64,000 nucleotides of DNA from NCBI GenBank assembly GCA_038496445.1, contig JALMLS010000404.1, positions 135,470 through 199,469 of the forward strand, given 5' to 3'. The notes beneath the pieces were generated by a model, which worked only from the letters and a program-made list of their open reading frames with translations, made no database searches and was not told the origin of the DNA. Of this stretch, positions 6,882-56,947 are shown piece by piece. This DNA comes from Trichosphaerium sp. ATCC 40318 (Eukaryota > Protista > Tubulinea). Each line of letters opens with the position of its first letter. Position 1 is the stretch's first letter. The translations under genes were made by a program, and so were the position numbers.

Positions 6882-7529
6882 ATGAATAAACAACAACATA
6901 CTAGGGAATCTGTTGGTGGGAAAAAGGCTCCGCGGAGGTACAACCGTATACTAGACCTTCCATTGGAGTTACAGCTTGATATTATGGAAGAAGGTGAAAT
7001 AAATATGAAATGGCCTCTTTTTTCAAAGCAAGCAGCAACGACAACCAGGTTTGATAGTAATCTAAATAAACATGGTAAATGGGTTAAATACAAGACGGAC
7101 AAGAATAAAAATATGTATTTGGTGTCAAAGGAATACTGGAAACATGGAAAACGCAATGGAGATTCGCAAAAAATGAATAAAAATGGAACTATCAGGATAC
7201 ATTGTTCCTTTGTTGATAACAAGCTTGAGGGAGTTTACAAACATTGGCATGAAAATGGTATGGTTTGGGAGGATTCTAATTACATTAATGGTGTCCAAGA
7301 AGGCAAGTGCAGACTTTGGTTTAGTAATGGTTCAATACAACAAAAAAGTCACTATGTCAATGGCTTATTTAGCGGAGAATATAAGAGCTATTATCCAAAT
7401 GGTGTATTGAAAATACACTGTTTCTATAAGAAAGGAAAGGTATCTGGTGAATATAAACAATGGAGCAGACTTGGTGTTCTAAAGGAACACTGTTATAAAC
7501 ATGATGGTAAATCTTGGCGCATTAGTTAA
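6882..7529 (+). CDS. F-box-like + MORN-variant (MORN_2) repeat protein, intronless
   Basis: ILDLPLELQLDI...W.LFSK followed by ~23-aa repeats (GxxxxWHENG, YxNGxxxG). Confidence 0.85.
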   Translation: MNKQQHTRESVGGKKAPRRYNRILDLPLELQLDIMEEGEINMKWPLFSKQAATTTRFDSNLNKHGKWVKYKTDKNKNMYLVSKEYWKHGKRNGDSQKMNKNGTIRIHCSFVDNKLEGVYKHWHENGMVWEDSNYINGVQEGKCRLWFSNGSIQQKSHYVNGLFSGEYKSYYPNGVLKIHCFYKKGKVSGEYKQWSRLGVLKEHCYKHDGKSWRIS

Positions 7530-7769
7530 GTTCTTTCTATTAGATAAAACCACATGTTTTGGGAACTGTATATTGCGCCTCATTGTGTTTGTGTGCACAA
7601 ACAAATAAACCCTTTATTCACTCTGAGTTTTTATCCAGAGTTTGGATATGTCTTTCTTTTTATTCTTTGAAGTTGGTTTTGAGCAAATACAGTGCAAACA
7701 ACTTTGTCCTTCCAGCTAATGTTCCGCCCATTGCAATTAGATATGCATTAAACAAATGAGGCAACAGAT

Positions 7770-8734
7770 TTAAAACATAAAGCATAAAAGGGTGCTGATC
7801 ACAACGATCAAAAACCCAACCACTAGCAATACAATGCAAATACACAATATCCTATATTCGCTCATATCATTAAGTTTTGTACTGTAGTCTTCTGCAATTA
7901 GTTGTCCATTTAAATCCCATTCTTTACTCCATAGACGCACACCATACTTAAGCATAACTACACTCCTAAGTTTGCCATTAAAATACCACATCTTACGCTC
8001 TCCATGTTGTTTATTTTGGACACACTTGAACTTCTTTTCTAATTGGCCATTTCTATACCATGCTTTATACTCTCCTTCTATCTTCCCATCAACACAATAG
8101 TATTCACTGTGCAGCTGCCCATTATCATGCCACCCCTTGAACTCTCCTTCTTCTTTGCCTTTGATGTAATAACCGTGAATGATCATGTTGCCATTATCAT
8201 AAAAAGACTTGTATTCTCCTTCAAGAAAACCATCTATGTAGTAACAATGCTTCTTTAAACGTTTAAATCGATCCCACTCTTTGTACTCCCCATGAAGCTG
8301 GCCATGTCTAAAATTACACTCAGACTACCATAAATTAGTCACAAACAATAAACATCATGCGTATACACATGACCACGTGGAGTTGAAACTATTTTTCACA
8401 ACGAATTTAAATTAGTCTTGTAAATGTATCGTTGGTTGAGTGCACTCAACATCACTATATTGGTTTAGGTTGCTTTTTCTTGTTTGTTTACCTTACGGTG
8501 ATAGTGGATAGAGCGCTTATTTCGAGTATTAGGGTCGAAAAAATACTTAATTTTGCTTTTTATCCACTTTCCATGTTTTTTAAGTTCATCATCAAACCTT
8601 GTGGTTGTTGCCGTGTATTTTGATAGAAGAGGCCATTGTACATAGACTGCAAAGTCTACATCAATCATATCAAGCTGTAGCTCAAGCGGAAGGTTCAACA
8701 CGTGACAATATTCTGATTTCGAAGCACTCATCAT
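7770..8734 (-). CDS. F-box-like + MORN-variant protein with a C-terminal TM anchor; one intron (~8326-8491)
   Basis: CGT AAG|gtaaac...ggtag|TCT GAG joins ORFs 8465-8791 and 7770-8186 in frame. VLNLPLELQLDMI N-terminus; hydrophobic C-terminus ILCICIVLLVVGFLIVVISTLLCFMF. Confidence 0.8.
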
Positions 8735-9045
8735 GTATCTCTTCTCGTGTGATGTTATGCGTTTCAGATACTCTGAACTTAACAAGTGCACAACTTAATA
8801 GCACGAACACTAGAGAACAAGACGCTCAATACACGTGCTACGCTATGTGTATTGTAAATTAACATAACATTGCATTGAGTTTACAACTATGTATTGTAGC
8901 TTACACCTCAAAAAATTCTCTGCCTGGCAAGAGATCCAAAAAGCAAAGACCCACGTGGTAATTTGTTATTGTTTATTTTGTTCGTTGACATTGAAATGTG
9001 CAAGCAATCAAAATGCTGGCCACGAACGACATGACCATTTGACGA

Positions 9046-13845: not shown

Positions 13846-15494
13846 TTATACAACCCTGCGACGGCCCATTTTCCGTACTTTACTATTTGGTTGTTGAACA
13901 TAAAAAGAAACACAATGTCCACATTCAATATGGCTACATAGGTGTTTTAGTAAGAATAAAAAAAGGCACAAAGTTCTTTTGGTTTCACAAATTAGAAGAA
14001 ATACTTACAATTGAGCTGTATCTTCTGTAACTACATACACATGGGAGCTACACTTTTTACAAAAACGCTTATCGCCAGCGCTCATTGCACCTACGTGTCT
14101 TTTGTCATGTGGAACTTTTTGAAGATTCTCCCAGAGCATAGGACACTCGAAGTCCATTGCACAGTTCTCTAATTGAATCATAAGTACAAAAAAACAGACA
14201 AAAACGGACTTGATCACACTGCACCGCAATCATGTTGTAGGTTCAATAATTCCAAGTACAACGATGATTGTAGTACCAATTAGTGACTTTATAAACATAA
14301 GCAGCACTCTAAGTGCAAAGACAGCTGAGAGTTCTCGATTTTTTTAGAATGGTGTTCATGGATTTGTACCTATTGTTGATGATGGGAAACGTGATCTCTT
14401 GGCATGCTTTAACTTTTCTTTTCTGAACAACACCGTAAGTATTACTTCATAATAAAGATGGTAGGACATAGAAGAAGAAATACAAAAACTGTGGTTGGTA
14501 CCTTGCCAAGAACATTTTTTTCCATGACTTTACTTTCAAGTTCTTGTTTTGTTTGTCAAAAGAACGAAAGTAGAGTGGTTTCCATATTGAATTATCACTA
14601 CTTATTGACTTGAAAGATTTTGATACAAGTGCTAGATTACAAAGAAAGTATCCTTTTTCTGTTACAGTATGCTAAAAACCAGAAAAAAGTAAGATTTACA
14701 GAAACCAAAAAAATTAGAATTGTCGCACTTCAAAGATTTTTAATGTCAGCTCTTCTGCTAGTTTTCCGATGTGATTGATATCATCAGCAATAAGCTCAGG
14801 GCGCGTCTTTAGTGTATTGACATCGAATTTGAATGGTTTCGATCCAAAATTTGGCTTCATAGCATCAGGATGGGATCCAACTTAAACACATCAATACCAT
14901 CACGTTTGTTTGATTTTATAGTGACTTACCGACTCCGTATAGATCCATACCGCGTGGGATATCATAGAAAAAGATGCCAAGGTATTTTCCATTGCGTGTA
15001 GCAAACAAACAAGCCCTTCTGAAGGAGTCTACAATGAAACCAAAACCGATAATGTCACCCTTATTGAACGATTCTGTTTTGTCACCAACTTCTCCATTAT
15101 GCTTTGTGTTACCATCAGCGAAGTATCCATACGAACTACATAGCAATGTAAGCACAGACGAGAGAAATAAGACCTAAAAAGCATCGTGGTCGCAGGCACG
15201 TGACTAAAAAAATTCGGCATCAGTATAACTTGCATACTTTTGATAGTCCCCTGGCAGCGTTACAGTATCATTTTTGGACGATGAAGAGAAGCCAATGGCC
15301 ATACCGCACCTGTAGAAGACAAATAAGTTAAAGGTGGCCCGTATAAAGCAAAACAAACCTTTCGCCAACTATTTCCGCTTCAAAATATGGAACCTTGTCT
15401 CCATTTCTTTCGTAAGGCGTTTTAGAGAATACCTTGGGTTTGTAGTAAGCATTAAAACGAATTACTGTGTCACACAAAACCGCACATTAATCAT
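13846..15494 (-). CDS. SPRY + F-box + Cys-rich domain protein; possible 2-bp frameshift at the 5' end
   Basis: SPRY: YFEAEI, IGFS, LPG, SYGYFADG, GDIIGFG, FATRNGKYLG, NFGSKPFKFD. F-box: LAEELTLKIFE..LALVSKSFKSISSDNSIWK. C-terminus: CPMLWENL..RFCKKCSSHV..CGHCV. Confidence 0.75.
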
Positions 15495-15937
15495 TGTGAA
15501 TTGCTTGTTTTAACACGTTGCCTTTTATGGGGAGTGTTAAGATATTTGGTTAAGTCTAGGTAAGCAGGTTTTCGGTTTTTGGAACGCGGTTCATGGTTTA
15601 TAGCTTAGGGAACTGCTAATCTTGGTAGATGAACTGGTAATTGTGTAAGATCACAATTGTCACTGCTCCAAACTCATTGGATATCAGTCAACCTTGTTCT
15701 CAGCTGAAATGTAATATAACATTTTGGCGAGGAAAACACATGGCTTCAAGCGACTTATAGTTGTTGCGTACGAACCCACACCAAGGTCAAGACTAAAATT
15801 TGTAGTACCATGGCTTGGAGGAAGACTACAATATTATGTCCGTGGCTCGAACACAAACATGAGCTAAGTATCTACAATTCTTTCATTGGAATGTAAATCT
15901 AAATATATTGTTACATTCTGTTACTGGCAATGTAGCT

Positions 15938-19238: not shown

Positions 19239-19493
19239 AATCGTCTTTGAAAGTAACGGTCAAACGTGGTTGAACTTCAACCAAAAGCCGACTTTCAAAA
19301 AACCGATAGTTAAGTGATAACTTTTGAAACGAACATATTTTCATTCTCCTAGTAGCTTAGTTTATGTCAAGATTTTTATTAAAAGGCGTTCTTGTATTCC
19401 TACGACATAAGATCTACAAAGAAAAATCAGAAGTTTCACTTAACCGTTTAAACACCTTAACAAGCCATTTAATCAAATAATTGGTCTGCGGGA

Positions 19494-22003
19494 ATGGAAC
19501 CCACGCATCCTTTTCATGTTGACGCTGTTTTAAGTGTATTGTTTGGACATGTAGAGTTGAAATGTTTACTTTCATGTCAAAGTGTCTGTAAGCGCTGGAA
19601 AAAGGTTGGCAGCTCAAATTGGTTGTGGAAAACGTACGTAACTACCGTTTATAGAAAAACTAAGTTATTTTACTCTTATTTATCCTCTTATCGCCCAGAC
19701 TAACACTTTATTAGTAAATGCAGCGGGTTTTGTTTCGAAACAATGGCTGAAAAGCAAAATTACCTTAAACCACCTCAAGGCTTTTCATACCAACAGTTAT
19801 ACAAGGCACATACACAAAGTACGTGATTAGAACCATAAATAGAGTAAAACCTCAGCCAGTTGTCATTTCTACAACTCGCCCGAACGAACGGAAAAACAAG
19901 TTTATGTCGTTGTTTAGGTGGACGTTGTAGACGCAATTATGTTGTTAAAAGTGAACCACACTTAAAGAAGATTTCTTTTGAAACACCCGAAGAAAGAGGA
20001 CAACCAAGAATGGTGTAAGTTTCACTAACCACGTGATAATCAATTAAAAAAACAAATTCTTCTTTTATTCTGAAAAAAAAAACTCACAAAGAATTCAGTA
20101 GGGGCTTGCGTGAAGAAGATAGATATACATCAATAAAGGTTGATGGCAAGAAATCAGTATATTTGGGATCTGGTTCGCAAACTGGAGCATTTTGGTGGTC
20201 ACATGTGGCTACAGCAGATGTTTCTGTTGAAAGTATTTCAAGTGCTTTAAATGCCAATCACGGAGATTGTTTTAGTCTGGAAGATGACAACCTACTCAGT
20301 ACCTTGAGTTCTATTTTCCCTGATGGATCGTAAGTTCATGATATACTCTTACAATTGATTGTACTTAAATACATTACTTTAGGTATGACGTTATGCAAAT
20401 TTTTGTTAGACCTGAGCTAGTCGAAAACAAATTAAAAACAATCGACAAAGAAGCAACTGATTTCGATGAAAAAGATTACTGGTCAAACGAATGGGCTAAA
20501 TATTGGGTACGTGGTTTTGATATTCTCCTTTCAGAAACCCTTTTTTTGCGACAAACAGTTTGTCAACAAAACCTGAACGGTTTGTATTTGAGTCGAAAAC
20601 GTTGTCAATGTCTGCTTGAGTGTTCACTTTAGAAATCGTCTAGATTCATATAAGGAACCAGGCTTTACCGCCTTTTAGCATATCTGTTAGCTAGACTTCT
20701 TTATATTGATAGTCAATACTGAGGGAAGCGTAGAGGATTCTGAAAGTGTAGACACCTTTACTTTTATTTTGTTTGGTTTTAATACATCTCAATGGGGTAC
20801 AGTGTACTCACTTTTCTTTCTAGGACTGGTGTGAGTTCTCTACAGAAGCAAAGAAAGAAATCAACATTGGTTGTCCTTCTTACTATCGTTGCTTTTATCA
20901 GCAAGACGAAAAAGAGTTTAGGGTTAACACAATCAATCCATTTCAAAAAATGTCATCTCTTGATGAATCACGTGTTAATTACTATGTTAATAAGCTTAAA
21001 AAAGGTGAAATACCTACAGCTATGTCCTTTGGTATGATTGATCGTCGTGGAACACCGTACCCAACAAAGAACTATTTGTTAAAGCAAAGCATACATACTG
21101 TTCTTTCAAATTTTCTGATTGATGGACATCACAAGATAGCAGCTGCAGCTAGATGTAACCTACCTTGTTCATTGCTTGTTTTCTTACCCAAACAACCTCT
21201 TATATACTTTCACCAAGACCCACTCCGTAATTATGACAGGGAAATATCATTCTTTACTGGCCAAGGATTTTCGAGAGGTACAACAGCAAAAAAAGCAAAA
21301 AACCCAAAAAAAAACTTCTTTTTTTCCTGCCCATAGAAAGACTTTGAGTTTTATTTCACTTATGAAACAATGGTTTCAAGGTGCAGTTGGGGGAACAAAC
21401 AATTTGAACTGTTCAAGTAAAAATATTGTTGTTTACGCTTGCAATCACACTTTCCCTCTTTTTTCTTATTGTTTTTTGTAGTTAAATGTCGTTCAAGGCA
21501 TGCTTTGCCGTACCCTTCAGATCCTCCATTTTTGATGATTCAGGACTTCTCTTCTTTATCATGGTATTTGACTCTTAAGAAAGAGGACATAGCTAATCTT
21601 TGGTGCTACATCTTTAAGGAGAACTATGATGGTGGAACCGAAACAAAGGTATGTTTCTTTTTTTTTTAAGTCTTTTTTTTAAATTCTTGTACCCACGTTC
21701 CTTGTGGCTACTGTTGGGGTTTTTTGCCATTAATATGGCTCTTTTTTAAAGCAAATATTGTTGATATACTTGTAACCATTGAGAAGAATGTTGACACGTT
21801 TAATTTAGTGGAATCCTGAGGAAGTTGTTAAGTCTGTTGTTTTTTCTAAAGATAAAAAACGATGTAAGGTAGAGTTTAGTAAATTACAATATCTTAAGGA
21901 TGCTGTATCTGTTAGCGGATATTGTTATAACTATGAAGGCAAGCTGGTAAAATTTTCAGGACACTACCTAGATGTTAAGCATTACATGAAAAAAAGTAAA
22001 TAA
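19494..22003 (+). CDS. Multi-exon F-box protein with a ParB/Srx-like motif
   Basis: F-box VLSVLFGHVELKCLLSCQSVCKRWKKVGSSNWLWK; later FLIDGHHKIAAA; stop TAA at 22001-22003. Confidence 0.8.
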
Positions 22004-22499
22004 AAAACAGCTAGCTGGTAAACAACATTCAGTTTGATTGATTTATCTATACATTAGTAGTACTACTGGAGGTAATTACATCATATTACCCGATCTAGCC
22101 ATGATTCGGAATCCTAGTTGGATGTAGCATCTGTTGTTTGGGCGTTAACGACAATTAGCAATAGATAGTAATTTACCTGCGAAATAGTCAACTTCGCCTT
22201 TCTTGTTTAATTAGACATTCATCAGTGATAAGTTTATAGATGGAGTTCCAAGATGTTTGTTTCACTGACGGGATATTAGAGCGAATACACGTATTTGTAG
22301 CGTTGATACCTTCAATTTAATGCGGTATCTAGGCGTTGTTTTGACATTAAATGTTGATAATGTGTTCGGTGGACGTTGGAGTATTCGAGGTAAAAGTATT
22401 AGTAAATTATTAAAGGAATATTCATCTAAAAAGAGTATTTTGTTCCAAATTTGAATTGAATTTCCTAACTCGACAAGTACAGTGAATTGTAGGTTTGTG

Positions 22500-26447: not shown

Positions 26448-26470
26448 TTTTTCTTGTAATTTTTTCTTCA

Positions 26471-28854: not shown

Positions 28855-28903
28855 ACTGACACCAATAAAACACAGTTTGATACCAAAGTTGACTTTTTCT
28901 GTT

Positions 28904-29006: not shown

Positions 29007-29034
29007 AGATGGAAATATTTTGTTTTTGATTGAT

Positions 29035-29052: not shown

Positions 29053-29067
29053 GCGATGCAGTCAATA

Positions 29068-43831: not shown

Positions 43832-44069
43832 ACGTTGGACACAGTCAATTTCATTAAATAAGCTCAATGTTGTAGTAAATTGTTATTGTGTCCTTTTTTG
43901 AAAAAAACAAAACGTTGCTGTTTGGATATCACTCTGTTGGACAATGCATTTGTACATGGTGATAACAGCAACTGTCCTGTTATTATTTTACGCAGAACTT
44001 GCACTGCATTTGAACTCCACAACCTATCGCTGGATACAAGCTTGTCATAGTATTTGTTCCAATCAATGC

Positions 44070-44195
44070 GCCTTGGGTATACCTACCATCAATCCACAGG
44101 AGCTGGGTTCTCTAGCTGTCCATGCTCACACCAGCATTTGCTGTCACCCGCCTTTATCATTGACATACATGCACTGCTTTTCCATTTATCCAAGG
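44070..44195 (-). pseudogene. Decayed MORN-variant fragment
   Basis: Minus strand reads QCMYVNDK/GDSKCWCEHGQLE/LLWIDGR with frameshifts. Confidence 0.55.
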
Positions 44196-44329
44196 AATTC
44201 ACAAAGTATAAATTACAAGAAATATGGCTTTTCACGCACGTGCGTCTTGAGGCTTAATAAGACGGTTAAGTTGTTATTTAAAGGAGGAAGCTAGTTGGTG
44301 GAGCAAATACCTAAATAATAGTGAGACAG

Positions 44330-45385
44330 ATGTTATTGTCTCGCCGCAAGAATTATTACCCTAGTATTACTGTATGTAATCTACTAGACCTACCAAATGA
44401 TATTCAAAGGTATTTATGCACTTTCAATAAAGAAATATTCATAAAGTTCCATACACTCTCTAAAAAAGCTGCAATCAACACCCATTTTGATGAAAAACTT
44501 GAAACAAAAGGTCTTTGGTTACGTTGGTATCCAAATGGATGTTTACAGAGTCAAACGATGATGCTTGAAGGTAAGAAAAATGGGAAACAGAAAAAATGGC
44601 ACGTGAATGGACAACTTTTGTTTGAAACAAATTATGTTGATGATAAGAGACATGGTATGTATAAGAGTTGGCATGAAGGAGGTCAAGTCAATGCACAATG
44701 TAATTTTGAGGATGGTAAAGAGAGTGGAGAGGGCAAACAATGGCATCCGAATGGTCAAATCAAGATACATACATTCTATGTTGATGGTAAACAAAATGGT
44801 GAGCACTGTGAGTATTATGAAAATGGGCAATTAGAACTAAAGATAACATATGTGAATGATAAGAAGCATGGTGAACAGAAAGAATGGTACAAGAATGGAG
44901 AGTTGGTTTTTCAATCAATGTTCAAGAATGGCTTGAAAGATGGTGATTGTACAAGATATTATGAAAATGGACAAATAGGCGAGTTTGAGGTGTTTGTTGA
45001 AGGTATTAAGCATGGTGAATCCAAAGAGTGGTACGAGAATGGAATATTGGCTTCTCAAGCTATTTATGTAAATGGAGAAAAAAATGGCGAGTTCAGAGGG
45101 TGGTATGAGGGTGGACAACTCCACATGAAATGCATGTGTGTTAATGACAAGTTACATGGAGAATTTAAGGAATGGTACATGAACGGACAACTAGGGTACC
45201 AGTGCACATATATTGAAGGTCAGGCACAAGGTGAACGCCTGAAATGGTATGATAATGGGCAACTACGATCGACAACAATGTATGTTAATAATGAAAAGCA
45301 TGGTGAGCACAAAGAATGGCATGAAGATGGACATTTCAAGCTTCAACAACATTATGTCCATGGTACATTAAAGGAAGACCCATAA
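44330..45385 (+). CDS. F-box-like + MORN-variant repeat protein (paralogue of 25295-26359)
   Basis: Collinear with the arm-B gene, roughly 90% identical by eye; first ATG at 44330. Confidence 0.9.
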   Translation: MLLSRRKNYYPSITVCNLLDLPNDIQRYLCTFNKEIFIKFHTLSKKAAINTHFDEKLETKGLWLRWYPNGCLQSQTMMLEGKKNGKQKKWHVNGQLLFETNYVDDKRHGMYKSWHEGGQVNAQCNFEDGKESGEGKQWHPNGQIKIHTFYVDGKQNGEHCEYYENGQLELKITYVNDKKHGEQKEWYKNGELVFQSMFKNGLKDGDCTRYYENGQIGEFEVFVEGIKHGESKEWYENGILASQAIYVNGEKNGEFRGWYEGGQLHMKCMCVNDKLHGEFKEWYMNGQLGYQCTYIEGQAQGERLKWYDNGQLRSTTMYVNNEKHGEHKEWHEDGHFKLQQHYVHGTLKEDP

Positions 45386-45879
45386 TGGGAGGATGAGTAA
45401 ATTACAAAGCATGAACAGCACTATTTCAGTACAAGATTAGCTTAATCAAATCAGATGAGATTCTGCGCATCAAAAATAACACGTGTTGTAGGCAACTAAA
45501 ACAATTTTTCAAATAAACGTTTGCCACAATAGATCAAAAGCATTAGCTTGTCTCCACTTGCATAATCCAACAAAGTCATTGTGAGGTTAGTTGTATTAGA
45601 GCGAATTGTTGTTACTCAAGATGTAGCTTTGTCAAAACAAAGTGCAATAAAATAGTACCGCTATTTGGGTTGAACTGTTCTTGAGGATGATTGTTGTACT
45701 TAGGAAAATGATGTTAGAAAAAAATTGTTTGTTTGAGTATTGGAGACTTCTCAGAGTAATTCCTTTCTTTTTTTCTAGCGCGAATACACTTGCAATATTG
45801 ACTCATCACATTAATCACGTGATTAATATCAATCAAGAACGAATTAAAGAAGGATTATGGAAAGTACGGCCGTTGATGT

Positions 45880-46884
45880 TTGATCCTTCTTTCAGTCAAA
45901 CATGGTATCAAACTGTGTTTTATTGGCGTCAGTATTACAAACAGCGTACCGCCAGAGATATGGCAGTGTATTATTGATAATGCTGACTCTTCTCAATTGA
46001 CTGTATTACAGAGAGTATCATGGCTCTTTAATTACCTTGTAGAGCACTCTCATACCCTGTGGAGAAAAGTACTGGCGTCTCGTTACCCAGTTACGTTTTC
46101 AGAGTCAAGTATACGAGATCTAGGTCTTAAACGTCCATATTATACGCTTTGTAAGCGCTTGGTTGTACGTGGCTTGTTTAGAGGTCATGTTTAATCGTTC
46201 TAACCACGAAAACAGGTTGGCAAGTACTTGTACGTTAACAATCGTGAGCGGGGAGATCGAGTGGTTGACAGGATGACTGAGCTTGGCTTTAATTGTGAGT
46301 ATCTTGATATTACTGGTGTTGGCAAGGGAATATTAGACAAGTATGATGCTATTGTTGTTGAGTCTAATTATGGGTTTGCTGAAGAAGGAAAGTATCTTGG
46401 AGACTTTCTTCGTAGAAGTGTTGACACTGGATCAGGTGTAATATCAGCTGTGTTTACAGGTTGTTCATTTGTAGAGACACCAAGTGGAGAATGGACAAGA
46501 AGGCATATGCCTATCATACCTAATAAAGATGAAAATAACAAGGATGGAACACAATTATACTGCTTTGAATATGATTTTATTAAGGATGACCCAGATCACT
46601 TTATTCTACAAGGTGTAAAGAGTTTTGGTGATATTGAGTTCATTGCTCTTGGTTCAGTAAATGATAGAGCAAAGCAGATTGCACGTGTTAAAGTTGAAGG
46701 TAATGAATACCCTTTTATTGTTGTTATCAATGATTCTGAATCATCATCCACTTCATTGCCTTCACATAGAGGTAAAATTGTTGGCTTAAATGCGTTTCTT
46801 TCAAATTATTTTTTCAGTCGTGGGAATGGTGCTGCACTTATTGGAAATATGTTTCTTTTCTCATCTGGTATTGTATGTGAATAA
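45880..46884 (+). CDS. F-box + alpha/beta domain protein (paralogue of 27913-28854); start uncertain
   Basis: Near-identical F-box exon and the same intron. The paralogue's ATG is ATT here, so the start may be a short upstream exon (ATG near 45857). Confidence 0.75.
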
Positions 46885-47650
46885 CAATAAACAGAAATGT
46901 CAGTTTACTTTGTTCATCGTCACAGTAATTGGTTTTAGCACTTGAAGAAATAGCAACTCAGGTAGTGATCCAAACAATGGTCAACAAATAAGAATGGTAT
47001 TGATCAAAATACCATTGAGTCTCATTCTGTCTTTTGTTCTTGTGCTAGTATCTCAATATGGTTGATTACTGGTCAAATGTAATTATGAAATTATATGTAA
47101 GAGTGAACTCATCGTAACCATAAGAACATAGCCATGGGTACTATCTCTATCCAGCAAGGACTTTGTATGTTATTTGTTTTGAAAAAGTGCATTCTTACTA
47201 TGCTTGACTTCTGTTTTAAGCTCTACGCTAAGTCTACCATGTTCACCTGAAAACCTAGCCAATCGTTACCCTAGAAACTTGAAGATGACTTGAGACAGGT
47301 GATCTAACGTGGATGTGTTTGGCCTAGATTGGTACACCAAGAAGGACCAGAGCCAGACTATCTACCCCAAGAACTAAGAGAAGGAGATGGGGAGCGAAGC
47401 GGGGTGGTGGGCTATTCGGTATGACTGGTTTATTGGTTTGGTTTTGTCGGATAGTACACAAGAGTTGTGTACAATGTTGACGAAAACGAAAGTGACTGAT
47501 CGGTCCACTCTTATCTTTTCACCCGAAATAAACGCGAAACATTTATTTCGCCGCTTAATACACATAGTAACAAATCAAGTGATTTAAATAAACACAACAG
47601 AAGACAAGTATTCTCAGTTTTTATTATTGTGTTGTTTACATAGTGACACT

Positions 47651-48418
47651 TTAATCAAATAAAAAATGGCGATATGTTGGTTTTGGAAGGCTTATTGGTA
47701 GTAAGCTTTTGTGAACACCAGAACAAGGATGAATATCTGGAATATCTGCTTGATATATGCTGATTTCAGTCTTATAATCACTGTTGTAACCACCCAAGCA
47801 TGCCCTCATTAGCCTTTGTTCCCAGTCTGCTCTTTCATACATCTTTGTAGGTGTTCTCTTCTTCAAAATAAATACGTCATGTAACATTTTTATTTGAGAT
47901 GTAGTTCGGACATTTGTGAACTGGAGAGGAGCATCACTGTTATAGCGTAATTCTTCATCGCTGTCACTGAAGTCACTGTCATTATAATCAGCACAGCCTT
48001 CATCTTGCTTTGCAGTGGCACATAGTTCTTTACAGTTGAGTATGATGGTATAGGCAACGTGGTTTGTGCTGAATCCCCAAAAGTAAGCTTTGTATCCTTC
48101 AACATTTTTCTTTTGGTAGTAGCCTAGTTCCCTTGGTTCATCGTATCCGTCTTTTGCATAGAAACCTTCAGGTACATTATGGTGAACCTCGTATTTCCTT
48201 AAATGACGTTTCCAAAGCGACTTTATGGCTACGAGCTGTTGTTGCCAGTCCTTACAAACCATTGTTGGTATTACAAGTGATTTAGCATCAAAGTCACCGA
48301 AGAACATCTCTAGAATCTCTGTAGGTATGAACGGCCATAGTTGTGTTGCCGTTGATGTTGGTGGTATTACCGACACTGTTTTTTGTAGCCTTTTAGAAGG
48401 CGGAACCTTGCTCATCAT
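47651..48418 (-). CDS. Intronless F-box protein
   Basis: IPTEILEMFFGDFDAKSLVIPTMVCKDWQQ..LWKRH; C-terminal domain unrecognised. Confidence 0.8.
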   Translation of the reverse strand: MMSKVPPSKRLQKTVSVIPPTSTATQLWPFIPTEILEMFFGDFDAKSLVIPTMVCKDWQQQLVAIKSLWKRHLRKYEVHHNVPEGFYAKDGYDEPRELGYYQKKNVEGYKAYFWGFSTNHVAYTIILNCKELCATAKQDEGCADYNDSDFSDSDEELRYNSDAPLQFTNVRTTSQIKMLHDVFILKKRTPTKMYERADWEQRLMRACLGGYNSDYKTEISIYQADIPDIHPCSGVHKSLLPISLPKPTYRHFLFD

Positions 48419-48676
48419 CGTTTGGTATTTGCTTAAAATGAAACAGTTTGCCGCTTTTTTATTTGTGTCACACAAACCTACAATTCACTGCACTGGTCGA
48501 CTTAGGAAATTCGGTCCGAATTTGGAACAAATACCCTTTTTTAGATGAATATTCCTTTTACAATTTACTAATACTTTTACCTCGAAACTTCCAACGTACA
48601 CCGAACACACTATCAACATTTTAATGTCAAAACAACGCCTAGATACCGCATATTGGAGGTATCCACACTACAAATA

Positions 48677-51461
48677 GGGTTATACTAAAATGTAGAATTT
48701 GCATGTCAAATGAATGTAGAATTTGTGTAGAAAAACCATATTTGACACCCAAATTTCTACTTTTCAAACACGATGGCTGATCAAAAGCTCCCCAGTCCAA
48801 AACACTGGGCTATACCCTCCATAGGTAATGTACACCTAGTGGAGTGGGTACCTGGCGATCGTTTGATCTTTTATATCAACTCAGGTACTACATGAGCTCA
48901 CCAAAACCTTGATTAACTATTTTATAGCAAAACAATATGGCTATCAATTTCATATTGATAGCAAGGCGTTTACATCAAAAGGAACGAGCCACTATTTTAA
49001 GTGTGCTCAGCAGTCGTTGTGTGGAGCTCGTGTTATCCTCACCGAGGATAAAGAACGCCATGGTATAATTAAAAACCTTCAGCAAACAAAAGGTACTTTT
49101 TTTTTTCTCAATTTCCTTTACAGTAATTTATGGCCTTAGATCACCACTATAATTGTATGCCTACCATGGCATCTCAATTTCACGTATCGAACAGCGTTAA
49201 AAAACGCGTTGAGGAAGATTTAAGAAATGGGGTACCATCACGTTTAGTGGTAAGTATTTCTCTTTTTTTTTGCTTTTACTGTACTAACTACTCTTCTAGC
49301 GAAGAAATTTGCTTCTTCAACCAAAAGTAAATGTCTTAAATCGTGCTCAAACACCTGATGCACGCCAATTGGAATATATTTCACGCTTGGTTCGTAGTGA
49401 GGAGAGCTTGAATGTGGAGGTACATTGGACTCTAAACAGCATTTTTTTTTTATTTTTTCGTAGGTTTTAACAAACCTAATTATGACTTTGGGGGATCAAG
49501 TCCGTGTTCAACTATCGCCTCTGGTGGTTTCTTTTGTTCCATCCAATATACAGCGCTTCTTAAAGGAGTTTGACGCCCGTACCATTTATGTAGATGGTAC
49601 TCATGTGATGGGAGATATTCGAGCTCAGGTACAGATTTTTTTATTACTGTTTTGTAGTAACTTATTTTTTGTAAGCTATTGCTGTTTTGGGTGAAGGCTG
49701 TCGGACCAACCAACTCAAAGGGTACTTGTATTTCTTGGGCTCTGTGCGAAGGTAAAAAACTGGAGCAATATGAGTACGCCTTTGGTCACCTTGGTCGCTC
49801 CATTGGCACTGTAGTGTTTAGAAGACTCATGGTTGATTGCGAATTAAATCTCGCTTACGGCACGTATTTGATAAATCCTTCTTTGTTTTTTTATCTTACC
49901 ACACTTCATTTTGATTCTCTTAATGATAGTGTGAGGCATTCCTTGGATACTAAGGAGAGCATAAACTCTTTTTTTTTGATACTCTTTTTGTAAAACTATC
50001 TGCTTACTTATTATTAAGCTGCATTGAATGAATGGCCTTTAATCCAAGTTCATCACTGTTTCTTCCATGTAATGGACGCTTTCCGCAAATGGAGAACAAA
50101 GAACCTTTCTGGAGATTCAAAGACAGCCATCTACCAATGGTGCAAAGCGTTCACTGATGGTATAGCGAAGGCTGAAACTCCAGATGAGTTTTATCGTATA
50201 TTTTTGACGTTTTATGATGTAAGTTTTTCTCTTTATTAGTACACACTTACTTTGATTTAGGAAGCTCTTAGTAGTACTAATGTACACAAGCGATCATATG
50301 CTAAGTATGTCAATAAGAACTATGTGGGCTATGACTTGGACTCAGCAAGGTACATTTTTTGGCTATTACAATTTTGGGGTTTACTTAACATTTTTGTCAG
50401 GTACGAGCCTACAACATGGGCTAAAGCCTTTATTGCTCTTGAGTTCCGCGAGGATATGACGAACAATATCAGTGAGTCCAACAATCGAGATCTGAAGCGT
50501 TGCTTAAAGGCAACACAGACACAGAAATCTCGTTTGGACATTCTTGCCAATCAATTGGCAATGTTTGTTGAAGAAAACTTGATTATTGGCCTAAGAATTG
50601 TTCATGGCATGTGTGCAGGGACTCGCATACGTCAGGGAGAGGCTAGTGTTGTTGGAAGTGATTTGGTTCAAGGTGCGAATCAACAATGTTTCTTGTTTAT
50701 TTTCCTTACAATTTGTTTTTATAGAAACAGACATCAATGATATGACACCTGCTCTCAGAGCTGATGTTGCCTCTGATGTTCTCTTTCCAAGTGATGCTAT
50801 TGGCGATCACCTTGTCTCCACTATTGATGATGTACCTGCTGAACATGAGATGCTACTAGGCATTGATATTGATGGAGAAGCCATCCCGGTCTTGGACTAC
50901 AGTGGTGATGGTGATGCTGCAGATGCAATACCTGTATCTTTGGAAGGTGGGATAGTTTCTCAAGATGCCCAAGAAATCTCTATACCACATTTAGCTAAAC
51001 GTGAGTTAATTTTTTTTTTGGTTGTTTAATTTTTTTTTTTTCCAGGTGGAACAAACCTACCTCGGTTACTACGCCGAATGCGGTTAGATGCTAAACGTAA
51101 AAAAGAAACAGAAGAGGAAGAAACCGAAAAAGAGAAGGTACCTCAAGCCAGAAATGCTAACATGGAGCCTGCATTTGTAGGTGACGAGATTGAAGGCATT
51201 GGTAAGGATGGTACTCCTGTTTTTAAACAACGTCTTCGCCCTCGTAACCGAAAGCGCCAAACTGTACTCCCTAAACGCTATCGCAATAAATAAATATGTT
51301 TGTCTGTGTCTTTTTTTATTGTCGTACCTGCACTACGTTGTTCCTGTTCTTCGTCAATGCTGTATATACAATGGTGAACAAAATTTGACTTTGACTTTTT
51401 AGGCACTTGTTCGGCATTTTTTAGGCAAAAAGTTTTTTTTTTTGACATTTTAGGGTCACCG
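48677..51461 (+). mobile_element. Autonomous-looking Mutator-like (MULE) DNA transposon with an 8-bp TSD (TACAAATA)
   Basis: TSD at 48669-48676 and 51462-51469; single copy (tatttgta, 22292-22299) at the empty paralogous site. Termini GGGTTATACTAAAATGT / CGGTGACCCTAAAATGT (13/17). Confidence 0.93.
48773..51293 (+). CDS. MULE DDE transposase, 11 exons, reading frame intact after splicing
   Basis: N-terminal FLYWCH/WRKY-like finger (YFKC..CGARV..HHYNC); YVDGTH (D1), LMVDCE (D2), CFFH, TNNISESNN (E); basic C-terminus. Confidence 0.9.
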
Positions 51462-51773
51462 TACAAATACGTTTATTCTCTCTTATATCCCGCCCGTCAG
51501 TGAAACAAACATCTTAGAAGTCCATCTGTAAACTTATCACTGATGAATGTCTAATTAAACAAGAAGGGCGAAGTTGATTATTTCCCAGGTAAATTACTAT
51601 CTATTGCTAATTGTCGTTAACGCCCAACAAAAGATGCTACAACCAACTAAGACTCCGGCTCATGGCCAGATCGGGCTATTTGAGGTCATTGTCTCCAGTA
51701 GCACTATTAATGTAAAGACAATAAATCAAACTGAATGTTGTTTAGCAGATAGCTGTTTTTTATTTACTTTTTT

Positions 51774-54271
51774 TCACGTTTTCGTGTAATGCTTAACATC
51801 TAGGTAGTGTCCTGAAAATTTTACCAGCTTGCCTTCATAGTTATAACCATATCTGTTAACAGATACAGCATCCTTAAGATATTGTAATTTACCAAACTCT
51901 ACCTTACATTGTTTTTTATCTTTAGAAAAAACAACAGACTTAACAACTTCCTCAGGATTCCACTAAATTAAACGTGTCAACAATCTTCTCAATGGTTACA
52001 AGTATATAACAACAATATTTGCTTTAAAAAAGAGCCATATTAATGGCAAAAAACCCAAAAGTAGCCACAAGGAACGTGGGTCCAAGAATTTAAAAAAAAG
52101 ACTTAAAAAAAAAAGAAACATACTGTTGTTTTGGTTTCACCGTAATCTTTCTTCTTAAATATGTAGCACCAAAGGTTAGCTATGTCCTCTTTCTTAAGAG
52201 TCAAATACCATGATAAAGAAGAGAAGTCCTGAATCATCAAAAATGGAGGATCTGAAGGGTACGGCAAAGCATGCCTTGAACGACATTTAACTACAAAAAA
52301 CATAAGAAAAAGAAGGGAAAGTGTGATTGCAAGCGTAAACAACAATATTTTTACTTGAACAGTTCAAATTCTTTGTTTCCCCAACTGCACCTTGAAAATA
52401 TTGTTTCATAAGTGAAATAAAACTCAAGGTCTTTTTATGGGCAGGAAAAAAAGAAGTTTTTTTTTGGGTTTTTTGCTGTTGTACCTCTCGAAAATCCTTG
52501 GCCAGTAAAGAATGATATTTCCCTGTCATAATTACGGAGTGGGTCTTGGTGAAAGTATATAAGAGGTTTTTTGGGTAAGAAAACAAGCAATGAACAAGGT
52601 AGGTTACATCTAGCTGCAGCTGCTATCTTGTGATGTCCATCAATCAGAAAATTTGAAAGAACAGTATGTATGCTTTGCTTTAACAAATAGTTCTTTGTTG
52701 GGTACGGTGTTCCACGACGATCAATCATACCAAAGGACATAGCTGTAGGTATTTCACCTTTTTTAAGCTTATTAACATAGTAATTAACACGTGATTCATC
52801 AAGAGATGACATTTTTTGAAATGGATTGATTGTGTTAACCCTAAACTCTTTTTCGTCTTGTTGATAAAAGCAACGATAGTAAGAAGGACAACCAATGCTG
52901 ATTTCTTTCTTTGATTCTGTAGAGAACTCACACCAGTCCTAGAAAGAAAAGTGAGTACACTACACCCTGTTGAGATGTATTAAAACCAAACAAAATAAAA
53001 GTAAAGGTGTCAACACTTCCAGAAGCCTCTACGCCTCCCTCAGTATTGATTATCAAATAAGAAGTCTAGCTAGCAGATATGCTAGCTTAAAGCTATACTT
53101 CAAGGTAGTAAAGACTGCTTCTTTACATGAATCTAGCTAGGCGATTTCTAAAGTCACTCAAATAACGTTTTCGACTCAATTACAAAGTTCAAGTATTGTT
53201 GAACTGTTTGTCGGCAAAAAAAGGTTGTTGAAAGGAGAATATCAACCCACGTACCCAATATTTAGCCCATTCGTTTGACCAGTAATCTTTTTCATCGAAA
53301 TCAGTCGCTTCTTTGTCGATTGTTTTTAATTTGTTTTCTACTAACTCAGGTCTAACAAAAATTTGCATAACGTCATACCTAAAGCAACATATTTGAGTAC
53401 AATCAATTGTAAGAGTATATCATGAACTTACGATCCATCAGGAAAAATAGCACTCAAAGTACTGAGTAGGTTGTCATCTTCCAGACTAAAACAATCTCCG
53501 TGATTGGCATTTAAAGCACTTGAAATACTTTCAACAGAAACATCTGCTGTAGCCACATGTGACCACCAAAATGCTCCAGTTTGAGAATTGGATCCCAAAT
53601 AGACTGTTTTCTTGCCATCAACCTTTATTGATGTATATCTATCTTCTTCACGCAAGCCCCTACTGAATTCTTTGTGAGTTTTTTTTTTTCAGAATAAAAG
53701 AAGAATTTGTTTTTTTCATTTTGATATCACGTGGTTGTAGTAAAACTTACACCATTCTTGGTTGTCCTCTTTCTTCGGGTGTTTCAAAAGAAATCTTTTT
53801 TAAGTGTGGTTCACTTTTAACAATATAATTGCGTCTGCAGCGTCCACCTAAACAACGACATAAACTTGTTTTTCCGTTCATTCGGGCGAGTTGTAGAAAT
53901 GACAACTGGCTGAGGTTTTTGTCTATTTATGGTTCTAATCGCGTACTTTGTGTATGTGTCTTGTATAAATGTTGGTATGAAAAGCCTTGAGGTGGTTTAA
54001 GGTATTTTTGCTTTTCAGCTATTGTTTCAAAACAAAACCCGCTGCATTTACTAATAAAGTGTTAGTCTGGGCGATAAGAGGATAAATAAGAGTAAAATAA
54101 CTTAGTTTTTCTATAAATGGTAGTTACGTACGTTTTCCACAACCAATTTGAGCTACCAACCTTTTTCCAGCGCTTACAGACACTTTGACATGAAAGTAAA
54201 CATTTCAACTCTACATGTCCAAACAATACACTTAAAACAGCGTCAACATGAAAAGGATGCGTGGGTTCCAT
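51774..54271 (-). CDS. F-box + ParB/Srx-like motif protein (paralogue of 19494-22003)
   Basis: Near-identical exons; slightly different C-terminus. Confidence 0.8.
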
Positions 54272-54457
54272 TCCCACAGACCAATTATTTGATTAAATGG
54301 CTTGTTAAGGTGTTTAAACGGTTAAGTGAAACTTCTGATTTTTCTTTGTAGATCTTATGTCGTAGGAATGCAAGATCACAAAGTAAACCTTGAAATACAA
54401 GTACTCCGCGTTTGAGAGTAGAAAGTTCAAGACCAAAATAAAATAGCTGTCACATTG

Positions 54458-55393
54458 ATGGCAACGAAACGTATCACGTGCGTTGATACATTAAACACAG
54501 AAGTCACAGACTTGTTTTCACTTCCAATCGAGATACTTTTAAATATTATCATTAGCAACGACCTAACATGGCAAGATTTGGCGTCGTTACAACAATCAAA
54601 CCATCATCTATGTCAAATAATACGAAATGAGTCAGCTTACATTTATCGACATTTGTACCATCAGAAATGGGGTCTTGATGGTGCAAAACTAGAGTCTACT
54701 ATCCATAAACGTATCGCAGGTCATTTAACACAACAACAGTTGACTGGGCACATAAAGGAGATAAAGACTTTGTATAACCTCGATGCAGTCACGTGGAAAG
54801 AAAAATACCTCAACAAACTTGTTCCAAACATCATCTTGGAGTTGAGTTGTAACAAAAAGAATGTTCACAAAGGACAAACAGTAACATTCACACTTACACT
54901 CAAGAATATTGGTAAAACGCCTGAGACAGTTTGCCTTGGTTGTGGATCTAGTCCTAATATATCTAGTGATATTGAAAGTGGTAGGTCTATTTATATTTGG
55001 AAGCCTCTTGTACAGGATCTCGGTGGCTTTCTGAACAATTCCATAAACAAACTTCATGTATCTAGCGAGTGGAATGTACATGACTATAACCTCATAGTGG
55101 AACCAGGAGATAGACATTCATTCAAAATTCCATTACTGTTAGACGCATTAAAGCCAGTACTATGGTTTGGAAGAAGAATGCCTCTACTACCTTCTGATAG
55201 GTTGTCTCTTCAGGGCAGCGTCTACCAAGTAATTGTTTGTGATGAAACACCAAATGTATTTCCTCTTCAAGTATTTGTCACGATCAATACTCTCAAGGAA
55301 TCATGTGAAGGTCTTTTAAATATTATACATGGACATTGTTCAACTGTTACAAGCAATATTGTAGATCTTACAATGTACAGGACACCTCAGTAA
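54458..55393 (+). CDS. Intronless F-box protein with an Ig-like beta-sandwich C-terminal domain, tandem copy 1
   Basis: LFSLPIEILLNII..LTWQDLASLQQSN; KGQTVTFTLTLKNIG and VEPGD motifs. Confidence 0.85.
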   Translation: MATKRITCVDTLNTEVTDLFSLPIEILLNIIISNDLTWQDLASLQQSNHHLCQIIRNESAYIYRHLYHQKWGLDGAKLESTIHKRIAGHLTQQQLTGHIKEIKTLYNLDAVTWKEKYLNKLVPNIILELSCNKKNVHKGQTVTFTLTLKNIGKTPETVCLGCGSSPNISSDIESGRSIYIWKPLVQDLGGFLNNSINKLHVSSEWNVHDYNLIVEPGDRHSFKIPLLLDALKPVLWFGRRMPLLPSDRLSLQGSVYQVIVCDETPNVFPLQVFVTINTLKESCEGLLNIIHGHCSTVTSNIVDLTMYRTPQ

Positions 55394-56050
55394 AGCTCTT
55401 ATAATTATAGAATTAGTACTTGAAAAGAAAAACAAAAAACCTTTTGATTGTTGCTTTTGCTGCAAGCATGACAACATGTTCACTTGTTTTCTTTCCAAAA
55501 AATCGACTACCAAAACGCCATGTATGATTTAACATTGGTGGATACAATCACAACATTGGCAACACAATTTGTTAGCAATAAGAATAAAAAATGAATACCA
55601 AATGTCAATGTTTAACATTGAATTACAATTCATGTTTTTGGCTATACGTACTTTCACTTCTTGTTCCTCTCCACGGCAACGCTCTAGTATCTACCTCTGT
55701 TTTAAGTTCACAAAGTATGTATTGGGTTTTCAAATCTGGTTGAAATACGACAACTATTGTACAATGATCATTATTTCTTTTGGCGATTTTCTGGCCAAAT
55801 AATCATTTGGGTGTTTTGAAACAAATTGTGCCCTACCTGAGGCTACCCAGTTACTTACATTAGCATTGATGTATTTTGAATAAAAAACTACACGTCTGTG
55901 TTGTGGGAACTTCTTTCTTCGAATTTTCTGATTGTATTTTCTTCTAATCAAAGGAGACGAAGTAGAAAAGCTACGAACCCAACATAATGAGAATAAGTAC
56001 GCGTTCTTGTGTAAACAAATTGACCAAAATAATGTACCACAAGTCCCATA

Positions 56051-56947
56051 ATGACAGCGAAACGTATCACGTGCGTCGATATATTAAGCACAGAAGTCAC
56101 AGACTTGTTTTCACTTCCAATCGAGATACTTTTAAATATTATCATTAGCAACGACCTAACATGGCAAGATTTGGCGTCGTTACAACAATCAAACCATCAT
56201 CTGTGTCAAATAATACGAAATGAGTCAGATTACATTTATCGACATTTGTACCATCAGAAATGGGGTCCTGATGGTGAAGAACTAGAGTCTGCTATCCATA
56301 AATGTATCACTAAAGAATTAAAACGTCTTAGTCAATTAGGTGTTTTAATACGTACTGCGACTGAGTATAATCTTGATGCAGTCACGTGGAAAGAAAAGTA
56401 TCTCAACAAACTTGTTCCAAACATCATCTTGGAGTTGAGTTGTGACAAGAAACATGTTCACAAAGGACAGACAGTAACATTTACAGTAACACTTCAAAAC
56501 ATTGGTAAAACAGAAGAGAGATTATACCTCGGTACTGGACCAAATAAATATAGCATTGAAGGGGGTAAGGCTATCTATGTTTGGAAACCTTGTATGTACA
56601 TGGAGTCTGGATACCTCAACAATTTCAAGGAAAGATACGATTATTCATACCCGCGGGAGAGAAAAGTTAATATTACAGTGAATCCAGGAGATAGGCATAC
56701 ATATAAGCTGACGTTACTTTTTGACATTAACAGACGACACGTTCCTCGTTATCTATCTCTTCAAGGTAGAAAATATCTAGTGTTTGTTGCCTGTGATGAA
56801 TCACCAAATGTGTTTCCTCTTCAAGTATTCGTCAAACTCAATACTAATAAGGAGGTATATGATACTCCTCTTACAAGTGTTCGTGGACAATGTTCAGTTG
56901 CCACAAGCAATATTGTAAATCTTACAATGTACAAGACACCTCAATAA
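56051..56947 (+). CDS. Intronless F-box protein with an Ig-like domain, tandem copy 2
   Basis: First ~75 aa almost identical to copy 1; same framework motifs. Confidence 0.85.
   Translation: MTAKRITCVDILSTEVTDLFSLPIEILLNIIISNDLTWQDLASLQQSNHHLCQIIRNESDYIYRHLYHQKWGPDGEELESAIHKCITKELKRLSQLGVLIRTATEYNLDAVTWKEKYLNKLVPNIILELSCDKKHVHKGQTVTFTVTLQNIGKTEERLYLGTGPNKYSIEGGKAIYVWKPCMYMESGYLNNFKERYDYSYPRERKVNITVNPGDRHTYKLTLLFDINRRHVPRYLSLQGRKYLVFVACDESPNVFPLQVFVKLNTNKEVYDTPLTSVRGQCSVATSNIVNLTMYKTPQ

Follow-up and report, generated by a model that had tools for sequence, protein, structure and literature searches.

Unstable F-box genes of Caenorhabditis form clustered paralogs in which a conserved N-terminal F-box is joined to a divergent C-terminus, with an overall dN/dS below 1; in C. 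elegans, C-terminal peaks above 1.5 were found in 73 of 95 paralog pairs (PMC8665587). Lineage-specific FBX genes of plants show relaxed purifying selection, duplication, pseudogenes and genomic drift, with no demonstrated pathogen link (PMC3030570), and the same drift pattern has been proposed for chlamydial F-box genes (PMC4209131). On the parasite side, the F-box and MORN families of Orpheovirus (PMC5786535) and the F-box effector expansions of Parachlamydiaceae (PMC4209131) evolve by birth and death. For the amoeba Trichosphaerium sp. ATCC 40318, F-box and MORN were reported as the commonest domains in virus-like genes, and its gene table holds at least 51 YwqK and at least 18 MORN entries, some best matching Pacmanvirus and some lying in adjacent pairs. 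Such genes were read there as lateral transfers with a part in the cell cycle; that report contains no cluster, architecture or selection analysis and does not appear to mention an F-box-like N-terminus on the MORN genes (PMC10521059).

We analysed a 64,000-nucleotide stretch of this genome (the window); its positions 6882 to 56947 hold 13 genes that carry F-box or F-box-like motifs. The window has 37% GC and short introns, like the genome as a whole (37.7%; PMC10521059). We interpret it, with a probability of about 0.58, as a rearrangement-prone region in which a lineage-specific birth-and-death pool of SCF (Skp1-Cul1-Rbx1) adaptors, partly of giant-virus type, is locally concentrated. It shares the clustering, conserved N-terminal F-box and divergent C-termini of the nematode genes and the duplication, pseudogenes and drift of the plant genes, and birth-and-death evolution with the viral and chlamydial families. 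Unlike those in nematodes and plants, its binding domains are of other kinds: six types occur together in one region, some of them bacterial or giant-virus in type. Unlike the parasite families, its genes sit on a eukaryotic chromosome amid intron-rich housekeeping genes. The 13 genes are as follows.

6882..7529, plus strand: M1, degenerate F-box-like N-terminus and MORN_2 repeats, 215 aa, intronless
7770..8734, minus strand: M2, member of the M1 family with a hydrophobic C-terminal tail (exons 8734-8492 and 8324-7770)
13880..15690, minus strand (outer ends approximate): SPRY gene, with SPRY, internal F-box and Zn-ribbon-like segments
19494..21336, plus strand: PB1, F-box and bacterial ParB-like C-terminal domain with an LIDGHHK motif, 7 exons, 418 aa
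25295..26359, minus strand: M3, F-box-like N-terminus and about 12 MORN_2 repeats, intronless
27913..28854, minus strand: AB1, F-box and alpha/beta-looking domain (exons 28854-28624 and 28572-27913)
29467..30751, minus strand (start codon approximate): M4, F-box-like N-terminus and recently duplicated MORN_2 repeats
44330..45385, plus strand: M5, inverted duplicate of M3 (DNA identity 93-95%)
45934..46884, plus strand: AB2, inverted duplicate of AB1
47651..48418, minus strand: U, F-box and a domain of unknown type, intronless
52435..54271, minus strand: PB2, inverted duplicate of PB1
54458..55393, plus strand: Ig1, F-box and DUF11/Ig-like domain (TIGR01451, E 0.003), intronless
56051..56947, plus strand: Ig2, tandem duplicate of Ig1

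A preliminary description of this DNA had counted about 13 F-box or F-box-like genes, with the F-box at the N-terminus of every fusion and about six C-terminal domain types, and had taken them for candidate SCF adaptors. Profile searches and reading of the sequence bear out six architectures: MORN_2 (five genes), ParB-like, alpha/beta and DUF11-like Ig-like (two each), unknown and SPRY (one each). The general picture of variable C-termini behind a conserved N-terminus also stands. The SPRY gene is an exception, as its F-box is internal. A six-frame HMM rescan of the window revealed no further full copies. Searches with spliced genes used their single exons. Exon chains of PB1, AB1, M2 and the SPRY gene are open in frame, and a non-standard genetic code was rejected given the clean frames under the standard code. 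The total of 13 holds as a count, but merging recent duplicates leaves about nine independent units, because the PB, AB and M3/M5 pairs stem from one inverted duplication and Ig1/Ig2 is a tandem pair. In addition, an F-box is detectable with Pfam in only eight genes (PB1, PB2, AB1, AB2, U, Ig1, Ig2 and the SPRY gene); for these the predicted adaptor identity is supported, whereas the five MORN genes match no F-box profile.

Among the eight, PB1 (29.6 bits), PB2, the SPRY gene (27 bits) and AB2 (24.4 bits) pass the Pfam F-box-like gathering cut-off of 24.3 bits, which AB1 (24.2 bits) misses by 0.1 bit. F-box-like E-values were 2e-4 for U and about 0.005-0.006 for Ig1 and Ig2. A joint profile of the N-terminal F-boxes of PB1, AB1, U and Ig1 retrieved Skp2, beta-TrCP, FBXO44 and others from the PDB, with a best E-value of 2e-6 for Skp2. 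In the SPRY gene (SPRY E 0.026) the F-box is interrupted by an intron at 14728-14672 within the in-frame exon chain 15134-14500. AB2 has ATT where AB1 has ATG; its frame is open further upstream and its start is approximate.

The C-terminal domains are less readily named. The domain first called ParB/Srx-like matched nothing in Pfam or the PDB, and we retain the label ParB-like because of the LIDGHHK motif and hypothetical bacterial homologs. By sequence similarity, the last exon of PB1 has relatives among hypothetical proteins of Tsukamurella (E 4e-14) and Nostoc (E 2e-11); metagenome scans gave none. The alpha/beta label was given by eye, and searches of Pfam, NCBIfam, the PDB and plasmids matched nothing to the C-terminal domain of AB1. 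U had no IMG/VR relatives, and its domain had no family, structure or plasmid match.

The N-terminus of the five MORN genes required separate consideration. These genes fall in a family of some 50 divergent proteins, most of those traced being MMETSP protist transcripts. Their N-termini are strongly conserved, in part through ascertainment, around L-L-x-L-P-x-E-L-x3-I and L-(S/C)-K. Pfam F-box and F-box-like profiles matched none of 46 family members at E<=1, a PDB search returned no F-box chain, hhalign gave a probability of 4%, and searching for homologs of the M5 N-terminus yielded nothing. Compared with Skp2, the motif is shorter by one residue and has no Trp in helix 3. The N-terminal profile gave z 3.6-3.7 against the Ig-type F-box and was not significant against three other F-boxes. 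The AF2 model of M1 (pLDDT 93; MORN_2 E 3e-14, F-box unmatched in Pfam) has N-terminal helices at 23-25, 28-35, 38-46 and 49-55, and the predicted placing of the last three after the LP motif would fit the F-box helix layout. Foldseek with the MORN model returned repeat matches only, and a single-sequence fold of M5 reached pLDDT 40. Failure of an F-box profile is not decisive here, because many Skp1 interactors in Dictyostelium have degenerate F-boxes (PMC9485057). We lean, narrowly, towards regarding this N-terminus as an F-box. Its failure in the F-box sequence tests counts against the adaptor reading, in which the adaptor role is a prediction from sequence.

Individual MORN genes differ in their state of preservation. 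M2 was considered as a pseudogene, a reading rejected on finding that its exons join in frame via a GT..AG intron; most MORN genes of the window are intronless, M2 being the one with an intron. M1 and M2 lie in inverted orientation, with N-terminal DNA 71% identical and a dN/dS of 0.21. M4 carries an in-frame TGA at 29635-29633, directly followed by a frameshift.

Established F-box biology would place these proteins as follows: the F-box would dock on Skp1, the C-terminal domain would bind a cytosolic protein, and the ligase would polyubiquitinate that protein for destruction by the proteasome. The pool would offer varied C-terminal domains, some common to bacteria or giant viruses. New copies would enter it by the segmental inverted and tandem duplication observed here, conversion or exchange would homogenise F-box-coding segments among copies, as synonymous sites suggest, and binding domains would drift under the relaxed purifying selection we observe while some copies decay. 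Such a pool would be a reservoir of specificities for mostly own-cell or incidental proteins, not a dedicated immune locus.

The structure of the region was examined by self-BLAST and family HMMs, with the following results.

19390..29281: large inverted segmental duplication with rearrangements, left arm
43400..54375: right arm, partner of 19390..29281
22550..22629, plus strand: truncated, frameshifted 5' stub of U, stopping ahead of the F-box
22773..22955, minus strand: weak MORN_2-like fragment, seen by eye (family HMM E 0.23)
27423..27737, plus strand: MORN_2 pseudogene fragment (family HMM E 6e-4)
48677..51461, plus strand: MULE-like DNA transposon within the right arm, with an 8-bp target-site duplication TACAAATA and short terminal inverted repeats
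10060-13417, plus strand, and 19284-15929, minus strand: inverted pair of PL8 (polysaccharide lyase family 8) genes, 88% identical, a non-F-box control

The inverted duplications, truncated copy and pseudogene fragments noticed earlier are real, and tandem duplication occurs as well. Of the several transposons claimed only the MULE-like element was found (FLYWCH E 3e-4; a YVDGTH motif was read in its sequence). The large inverted duplication, with arms 76-93% identical by self-BLAST and internally rearranged, gave rise to the PB, AB and M3/M5 pairs. A large inverted repeat at 88-97% identity, in the draft assembly of an amoeba that is multinucleate and may be polyploid (PMC10521059), could also arise from fold-back long reads or merged haplotypes, which would inflate the count and leave no cluster. 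We consider such an artefact very improbable: differences between the arms are codon-aware, with dN<dS and intact frames, unlike read errors; the arms are rearranged internally and one carries a transposon with its target-site duplication; and nine distinct units survive the merging of duplicates.

Duplication in the window is not specific to F-box genes. The PL8 pair, with Lyase_8 and Lyase_8_C matches, encloses the SPRY gene and represents a separate duplication, and a small gene at about 21.4-22.0 kb was copied with the large inverted one. The housekeeping neighbours had been described as single-copy; this is true of PARP, RRM and beta-adaptin, which lie between or outside the duplication arms and are single-copy for that reason.

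The birth-and-death behaviour proposed earlier is supported by duplicates of recent date, copies in decay and paralogs restricted to the lineage. The three informative duplicate pairs gave dN/dS values of 0.39 (M3/M5, p 0.002), 0.50 (p 3e-5) and 0.54 (p 0.02), and the duplicates are under relaxed purifying selection (dN/dS about 0.4-0.5). Sliding windows of 45 codons over the duplicates revealed none with dN significantly above dS, unlike the C-terminal peaks in most Caenorhabditis pairs (PMC8665587). Arms-race selection on the binding domains thus did not appear in these pairwise and sliding-window tests, which cover three pairs, have low power and are blind to site-specific or episodic positive selection. 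F-box-coding segments of the Ig (p 4e-8) and AB (p 4e-4) genes are homogenised at synonymous sites too, pointing to gene conversion or module exchange and not protein-level selection alone. The cluster has the look of an ordinary gene family with fast turnover. Counting against a drift pool, the retention of some 50 MORN paralogs that are transcribed, deeply diverged and conserved in an N-terminal motif is a great deal to ask of pure drift.

These data bear on the proposal that the locus is an undescribed intracellular defence arsenal, whose adaptors recognise giant-virus or intracellular-bacterial proteins and send them to the proteasome while their variable C-termini track pathogen antigens. 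'Undescribed' holds only in part: giant-virus-like F-box/MORN enrichment was already reported for this amoeba, though not in terms of a defence locus (PMC10521059). Conserved F-boxes, swappable binding domains, clustering and decay recall the nematode unstable F-box genes proposed as foreign-protein recognisers (PMC8665587). The MORN family has many members and is transcribed, its MORN_2 repeats vary at defined positions, and the lineage trades genes heavily with giant viruses (PMC10521059). However, dN exceeds dS neither overall nor in windows, and the repeats of M4, compared among themselves, have pN 0.23 against pS 0.50. Duplication geometry accounts for the single-copy neighbours, and the lyase gene is duplicated equally. 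Lineage-specific F-boxes of Arabidopsis were not linked to pathogen response (PMC3030570), and PADLOC gave no match, a result that carries little weight in a eukaryote. Neither selection nor anything else testable in the window supports the defence inference, which we regard as doubtful. If true, it would mean a ubiquitin-based immune repertoire in protists and would make the unproven idea of F-boxes as foreign-protein receptors testable in a cultivable amoeba by giant-virus and bacterial challenge. The adaptor-pool reading itself adds a Pfam-invisible protist family of F-box-like N-termini with MORN_2 repeats, about 50 divergent members strong and probably listed in other annotations under 'YwqK antitoxin' or 'MORN protein', and a small case of F-box modules homogenised between paralogs while binding domains diverge.

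MORN_2 repeats are of a giant-virus and bacterial type, and the MORN genes share repeat type and fold with amoebal giant viruses. Their best structural matches are MORN proteins of Nucleocytoviricota (Orpheovirus, Pithovirus LCPAC, Hyperionvirus) at E ~1e-15, against 1e-6 for cellular MORN proteins. An intronless, virus-like contig of 28% GC (L093) carries ten half-F-box-MORN_2 genes in tandem, and family members P0034 and P0054 sit on two intronless AT-rich contigs. The window does not look like an endogenous giant-virus insertion: intron-rich PARP, RRM and adaptin genes lie among the F-box and MORN genes, there is no composition break, and IMG/VR scans with near-exact short words gave no close relatives. 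The five MORN genes may instead be captured giant-virus effectors, viral SCF hijackers amplified by the host and perhaps past Skp1 binding as decoys, repeat scaffolds or near-neutral passengers, leaving only the other eight genes as true adaptors. The structural matches, the contigs, the mostly intronless genes, the 55 MORN and 81 F-box paralogs of Orpheovirus (PMC5786535) and the zero of 46 Pfam F-box matches would fit this. We nevertheless hold it to be unlikely. MORN_2 is as common in bacteria (YwqK-like), the three contigs are virus-like only, and the N-terminus is conserved and, by the M1/M2 dN/dS, under purifying selection. IMG/VR and GTDB pattern scans, which require near-exact 7-8-residue words and miss distant kin, found no relative of the N-terminal domain; L093 lacks the KWPLL(S/C)K...RFD signature of the window MORN genes, and the IMG/VR scans did not find it either. 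The family tree (53 columns) is mostly without resolution. It is rather unlikely, too, that the amoeba adopted the anti-SCF degenerate F-box-MORN_2 design of giant viruses, expanded it into a set of transcribed variants numbering dozens or hundreds, and joins F-boxes by shuffling to captured bacterial or viral binding domains, as a proteasome-based intracellular immune repertoire. Beyond the MORN family, Ig2 had a single full-length MMETSP homolog, P0061 (42%), and in metagenome scans the best relatives of the beta-adaptin stood at 72%.

The F-box genes of the window are best read as a birth-and-death reservoir of predicted SCF adaptors, at a probability of about 0.58. By established F-box biology, their products would recruit substrates to SCF, with proteasomal degradation following. 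A reservoir of this type has been described for plant F-boxes (PMC3030570) and proposed for those of amoeba-infecting chlamydiae (PMC4209131). Thirteen genes were confirmed:

6882..7529 (+), 7770..8734 (-), 25295..26359 (-), 29467..30751 (-), 44330..45385 (+): M1 to M5, MORN_2 genes with an F-box-like N-terminus
19494..21336 (+), 52435..54271 (-): PB1 and PB2, ParB-like
27913..28854 (-), 45934..46884 (+): AB1 and AB2, alpha/beta
54458..55393 (+), 56051..56947 (+): Ig1 and Ig2, Ig-like
47651..48418 (-): U, domain unknown
13880..15690 (-): SPRY gene

This bears out the preliminary description's count of about 13 F-box(-like) genes with about six C-terminal types. F-box identity is supported for the eight genes with Pfam F-box(-like) matches, four exceeding the curated cut-off; the N-terminus of M1-M5 has no Pfam F-box match. 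The four non-MORN N-terminal types, combined into one profile, found Skp2, beta-TrCP and further F-boxes of solved structure (best E 2e-6). The F-box placed at the N-terminus of the SPRY gene proved to be internal and interrupted by an intron. Spliced genes were searched one exon at a time; in PB1 (418 aa), AB1, M2 and the stretch running from SPRY to F-box, the exons could be followed without a break in the reading frame. M4 has a frameshift and an in-frame stop within its last repeats, and AB2 has ATT at the position of the AB1 ATG, its upstream frame being open. The truncated copies and pseudogene fragments described earlier are present as a stub of U and two decayed MORN fragments.

The last PB exon has its matches in hypothetical proteins of actinobacteria and cyanobacteria that carry the motif LLDGHHK (36%, E 4e-14). 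The Ig-like genes gave a weak DUF11-type match and a single full-length MMETSP homolog (42%), and searches with the AB and U C-terminal domains returned no match. The SPRY gene ends in a Zn-ribbon-like module, CP..W..L...CxxC (14011-14178, -; Zn_ribbon_11, E 0.04), which we take to be mostly bacterial. The hydrophobic stretch at the M2 C-terminus (7773-7850, -) may serve as a membrane anchor, or a last intron may have been missed there.

Self-comparison recovered the inverted duplications that had been proposed, as one large rearranged unit (about 19.4-29.3 kb against 43.4-54.4 kb) explaining PB1/2, AB1/2, M3/M5 and the U stub. Ig1/Ig2 form a further tandem pair and M1/M2 an old inverted one, leaving about nine independent units once duplicates are accounted for. 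The inverted duplication might instead be an assembly artefact, but inter-arm differences respect codons, which argues against this. Housekeeping neighbours had been called single-copy; this holds for PARP (WGR and PARP domains), an RRM-type gene recognised by eye and beta-adaptin (nearest metagenome relative 72% identical), whose positions between the arms or beyond them account for it. Duplication also extends past the F-box genes, to one gene copied within the large inverted duplication and to a separately duplicated lyase gene of a presumably mainly bacterial family; a transposon sits in one arm:

10060-13417 (+) and 15929-19284 (-): polysaccharide lyase family 8 genes, inverted intron-rich pair (self-comparison)
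48677-51461: MULE-like transposon within one duplication arm, FLYWCH match, 8-bp target-site duplication

The MULE-like element carries a FLYWCH/DDE-type transposase with an intron and short terminal inverted repeats. A 145-bp direct repeat (73% identical; 6397-6537 and 30757-30901), upstream of the oppositely oriented M1 and M4, could represent a small mobile element, or a piece of promoter common to both genes.

The duplicates are under relaxed purifying selection. Pairwise dN/dS was 0.39 (p 0.002) in M3/M5, 0.50 (p 3e-5) in Ig1/2 and 0.54 (p 0.02) in the C-terminal AB exon, and the N-termini of M1/M2 gave 0.21; among M4 internal repeats, pN was 0.23 against a pS of 0.50. In sliding windows over duplicate pairs, dN significantly exceeded dS in no 45-codon window, whereas 73 of 95 C. 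elegans F-box pairs, at the same window size, reach dN/dS values above 1.5 in peaks towards the C-terminus (PMC8665587). The proposal that these genes form an intracellular defence repertoire is unlikely, but keeps some probability because such negative pairwise tests carry little power and the MORN family, the relatives of M1-M5 by N-terminus, is large. The F-box pool of this kind described in plants has lineage-specific members that showed no link to pathogen response (PMC3030570). Among titles and abstract openings, the literature search brought up no publication dedicated to F-box defence in amoebae.

Within duplicate pairs, the 5' segments are homogenised. Comparing synonymous sites of the F-box-coding segment with the remainder gave differences of 2/45 against 68/148 for the Ig pair (p 4e-8), 0/54 against 23/140 for AB (p 4e-4) and, for the F-box-like segment of M3/M5, 0/28 against 17.5/154 (p 0.08). 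Such near-identity suggests that genes were converted or modules exchanged. Patchiness is seen in the lyase pair too, which diverges by about 10-25% at the 5' end and down to 0-5% at the 3' end, so F-boxes are not alone in having tracts of this sort.

A profile of the five M1-M5 N-termini without repeats retrieved 54 representatives among 1.84 billion proteins, the window's own genes not being among the matches. Sources were checked for 20: 14 MMETSP clusters, five JGI-only and one ENA. Four JGI proteins were traced to one sample (3300016894), on transcript-like contigs of 0.9-2.7 kb and 35-37% GC, and further members lie on eukaryote-looking contigs from ENA ERZ25072490 and a second JGI sample. 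From this count and these sources, the family is large and of narrow distribution, and it is apparently transcribed. Its N-terminus conserves L-L-x-L-P-x-E-L-x3-I and L-(S/C)-K, matched Pfam in 0 of 46 members and gave no match in a PDB profile search; profile comparisons with F-boxes were weak or mixed. In the AlphaFold2 model (pLDDT 93), three helices and a short turn occupy F-box positions; compared with Skp2, the N-terminal motif is one residue shorter and lacks the helix-3 tryptophan. On balance we lean slightly towards predicted Skp1 binding. The F-box-like MORN family is the most novel element here, and titles and abstract openings contained no description of it.

The best Foldseek matches of a MORN protein were giant-virus MORN proteins (E about 1e-15, against 1e-6 for cellular MORNs), driven mainly by the repeats. 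Three contigs look like giant-virus DNA:

L093 (JGI 3300037810), 266-8765: ten tandem half-F-box and MORN_2 genes, intronless, 28% GC
L089, 2097-2561: family member P0034, AT-rich intronless ORFan contig, 32% GC
L090, 62-499: family member P0054, AT-rich intronless ORFan contig, 23% GC

L093, reached via one weak match, also carries GIY-YIG genes and is probably giant-virus DNA; seven of eight of its genes tested matched Pfam F-box at E 0.004-0.04. P0034 and P0054 may be viral homologs of the amoeba MORN family. No hallmark gene was found on the three contigs, nor relatives of them in IMG/VR scans. Together, the MORN matches and virus-like contigs suggest that the F-box-like and MORN_2 design is probably common to amoeba family and giant viruses; transfer could have gone in either direction. 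Captured viral genes without adaptor function are a doubtful account of the locus, a shade less probable than defence, and may describe the MORN subset. In the Trichosphaerium sp. genome (PMC10521059), F-box and MORN are the most frequent domains among giant-virus-like genes, and its gene table has at least 51 'YwqK' and at least 18 'MORN' entries.

The Trichosphaerium sp. genome has a GC content of 37.7%, and its introns average 75 bp (PMC10521059). AT-rich eukaryotic DNA (GC 0.37) makes up the window, which has no compositional break and uses the standard genetic code and mostly short GT-AG introns. A gene at 3200-6300 (-) encodes a membrane protein that combines a long mucin-like repeat, PPTT(V/I), with parts that look Ig-like, a transmembrane segment and a tail that is acidic (Ser/Glu). 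A multi-exon secreted protein (40250-43830, +) resembles by eye a glycoside hydrolase of bacterial type that has a carbohydrate-binding module at its N-terminus; its exons, searched singly, had no Pfam match. A small Cys-rich ORF with a signal peptide (26470-26860, +), followed beyond a stop by a similar second unit, is not present in the other duplication arm. CACGTG occurs 59 times in window 1-64000, often directly upstream of genes; base composition would predict about 7 occurrences and a Markov model 31. It is enriched also in eukaryote-looking contigs with MORN family members (L086, L087, L004), and so may be a lineage promoter motif.
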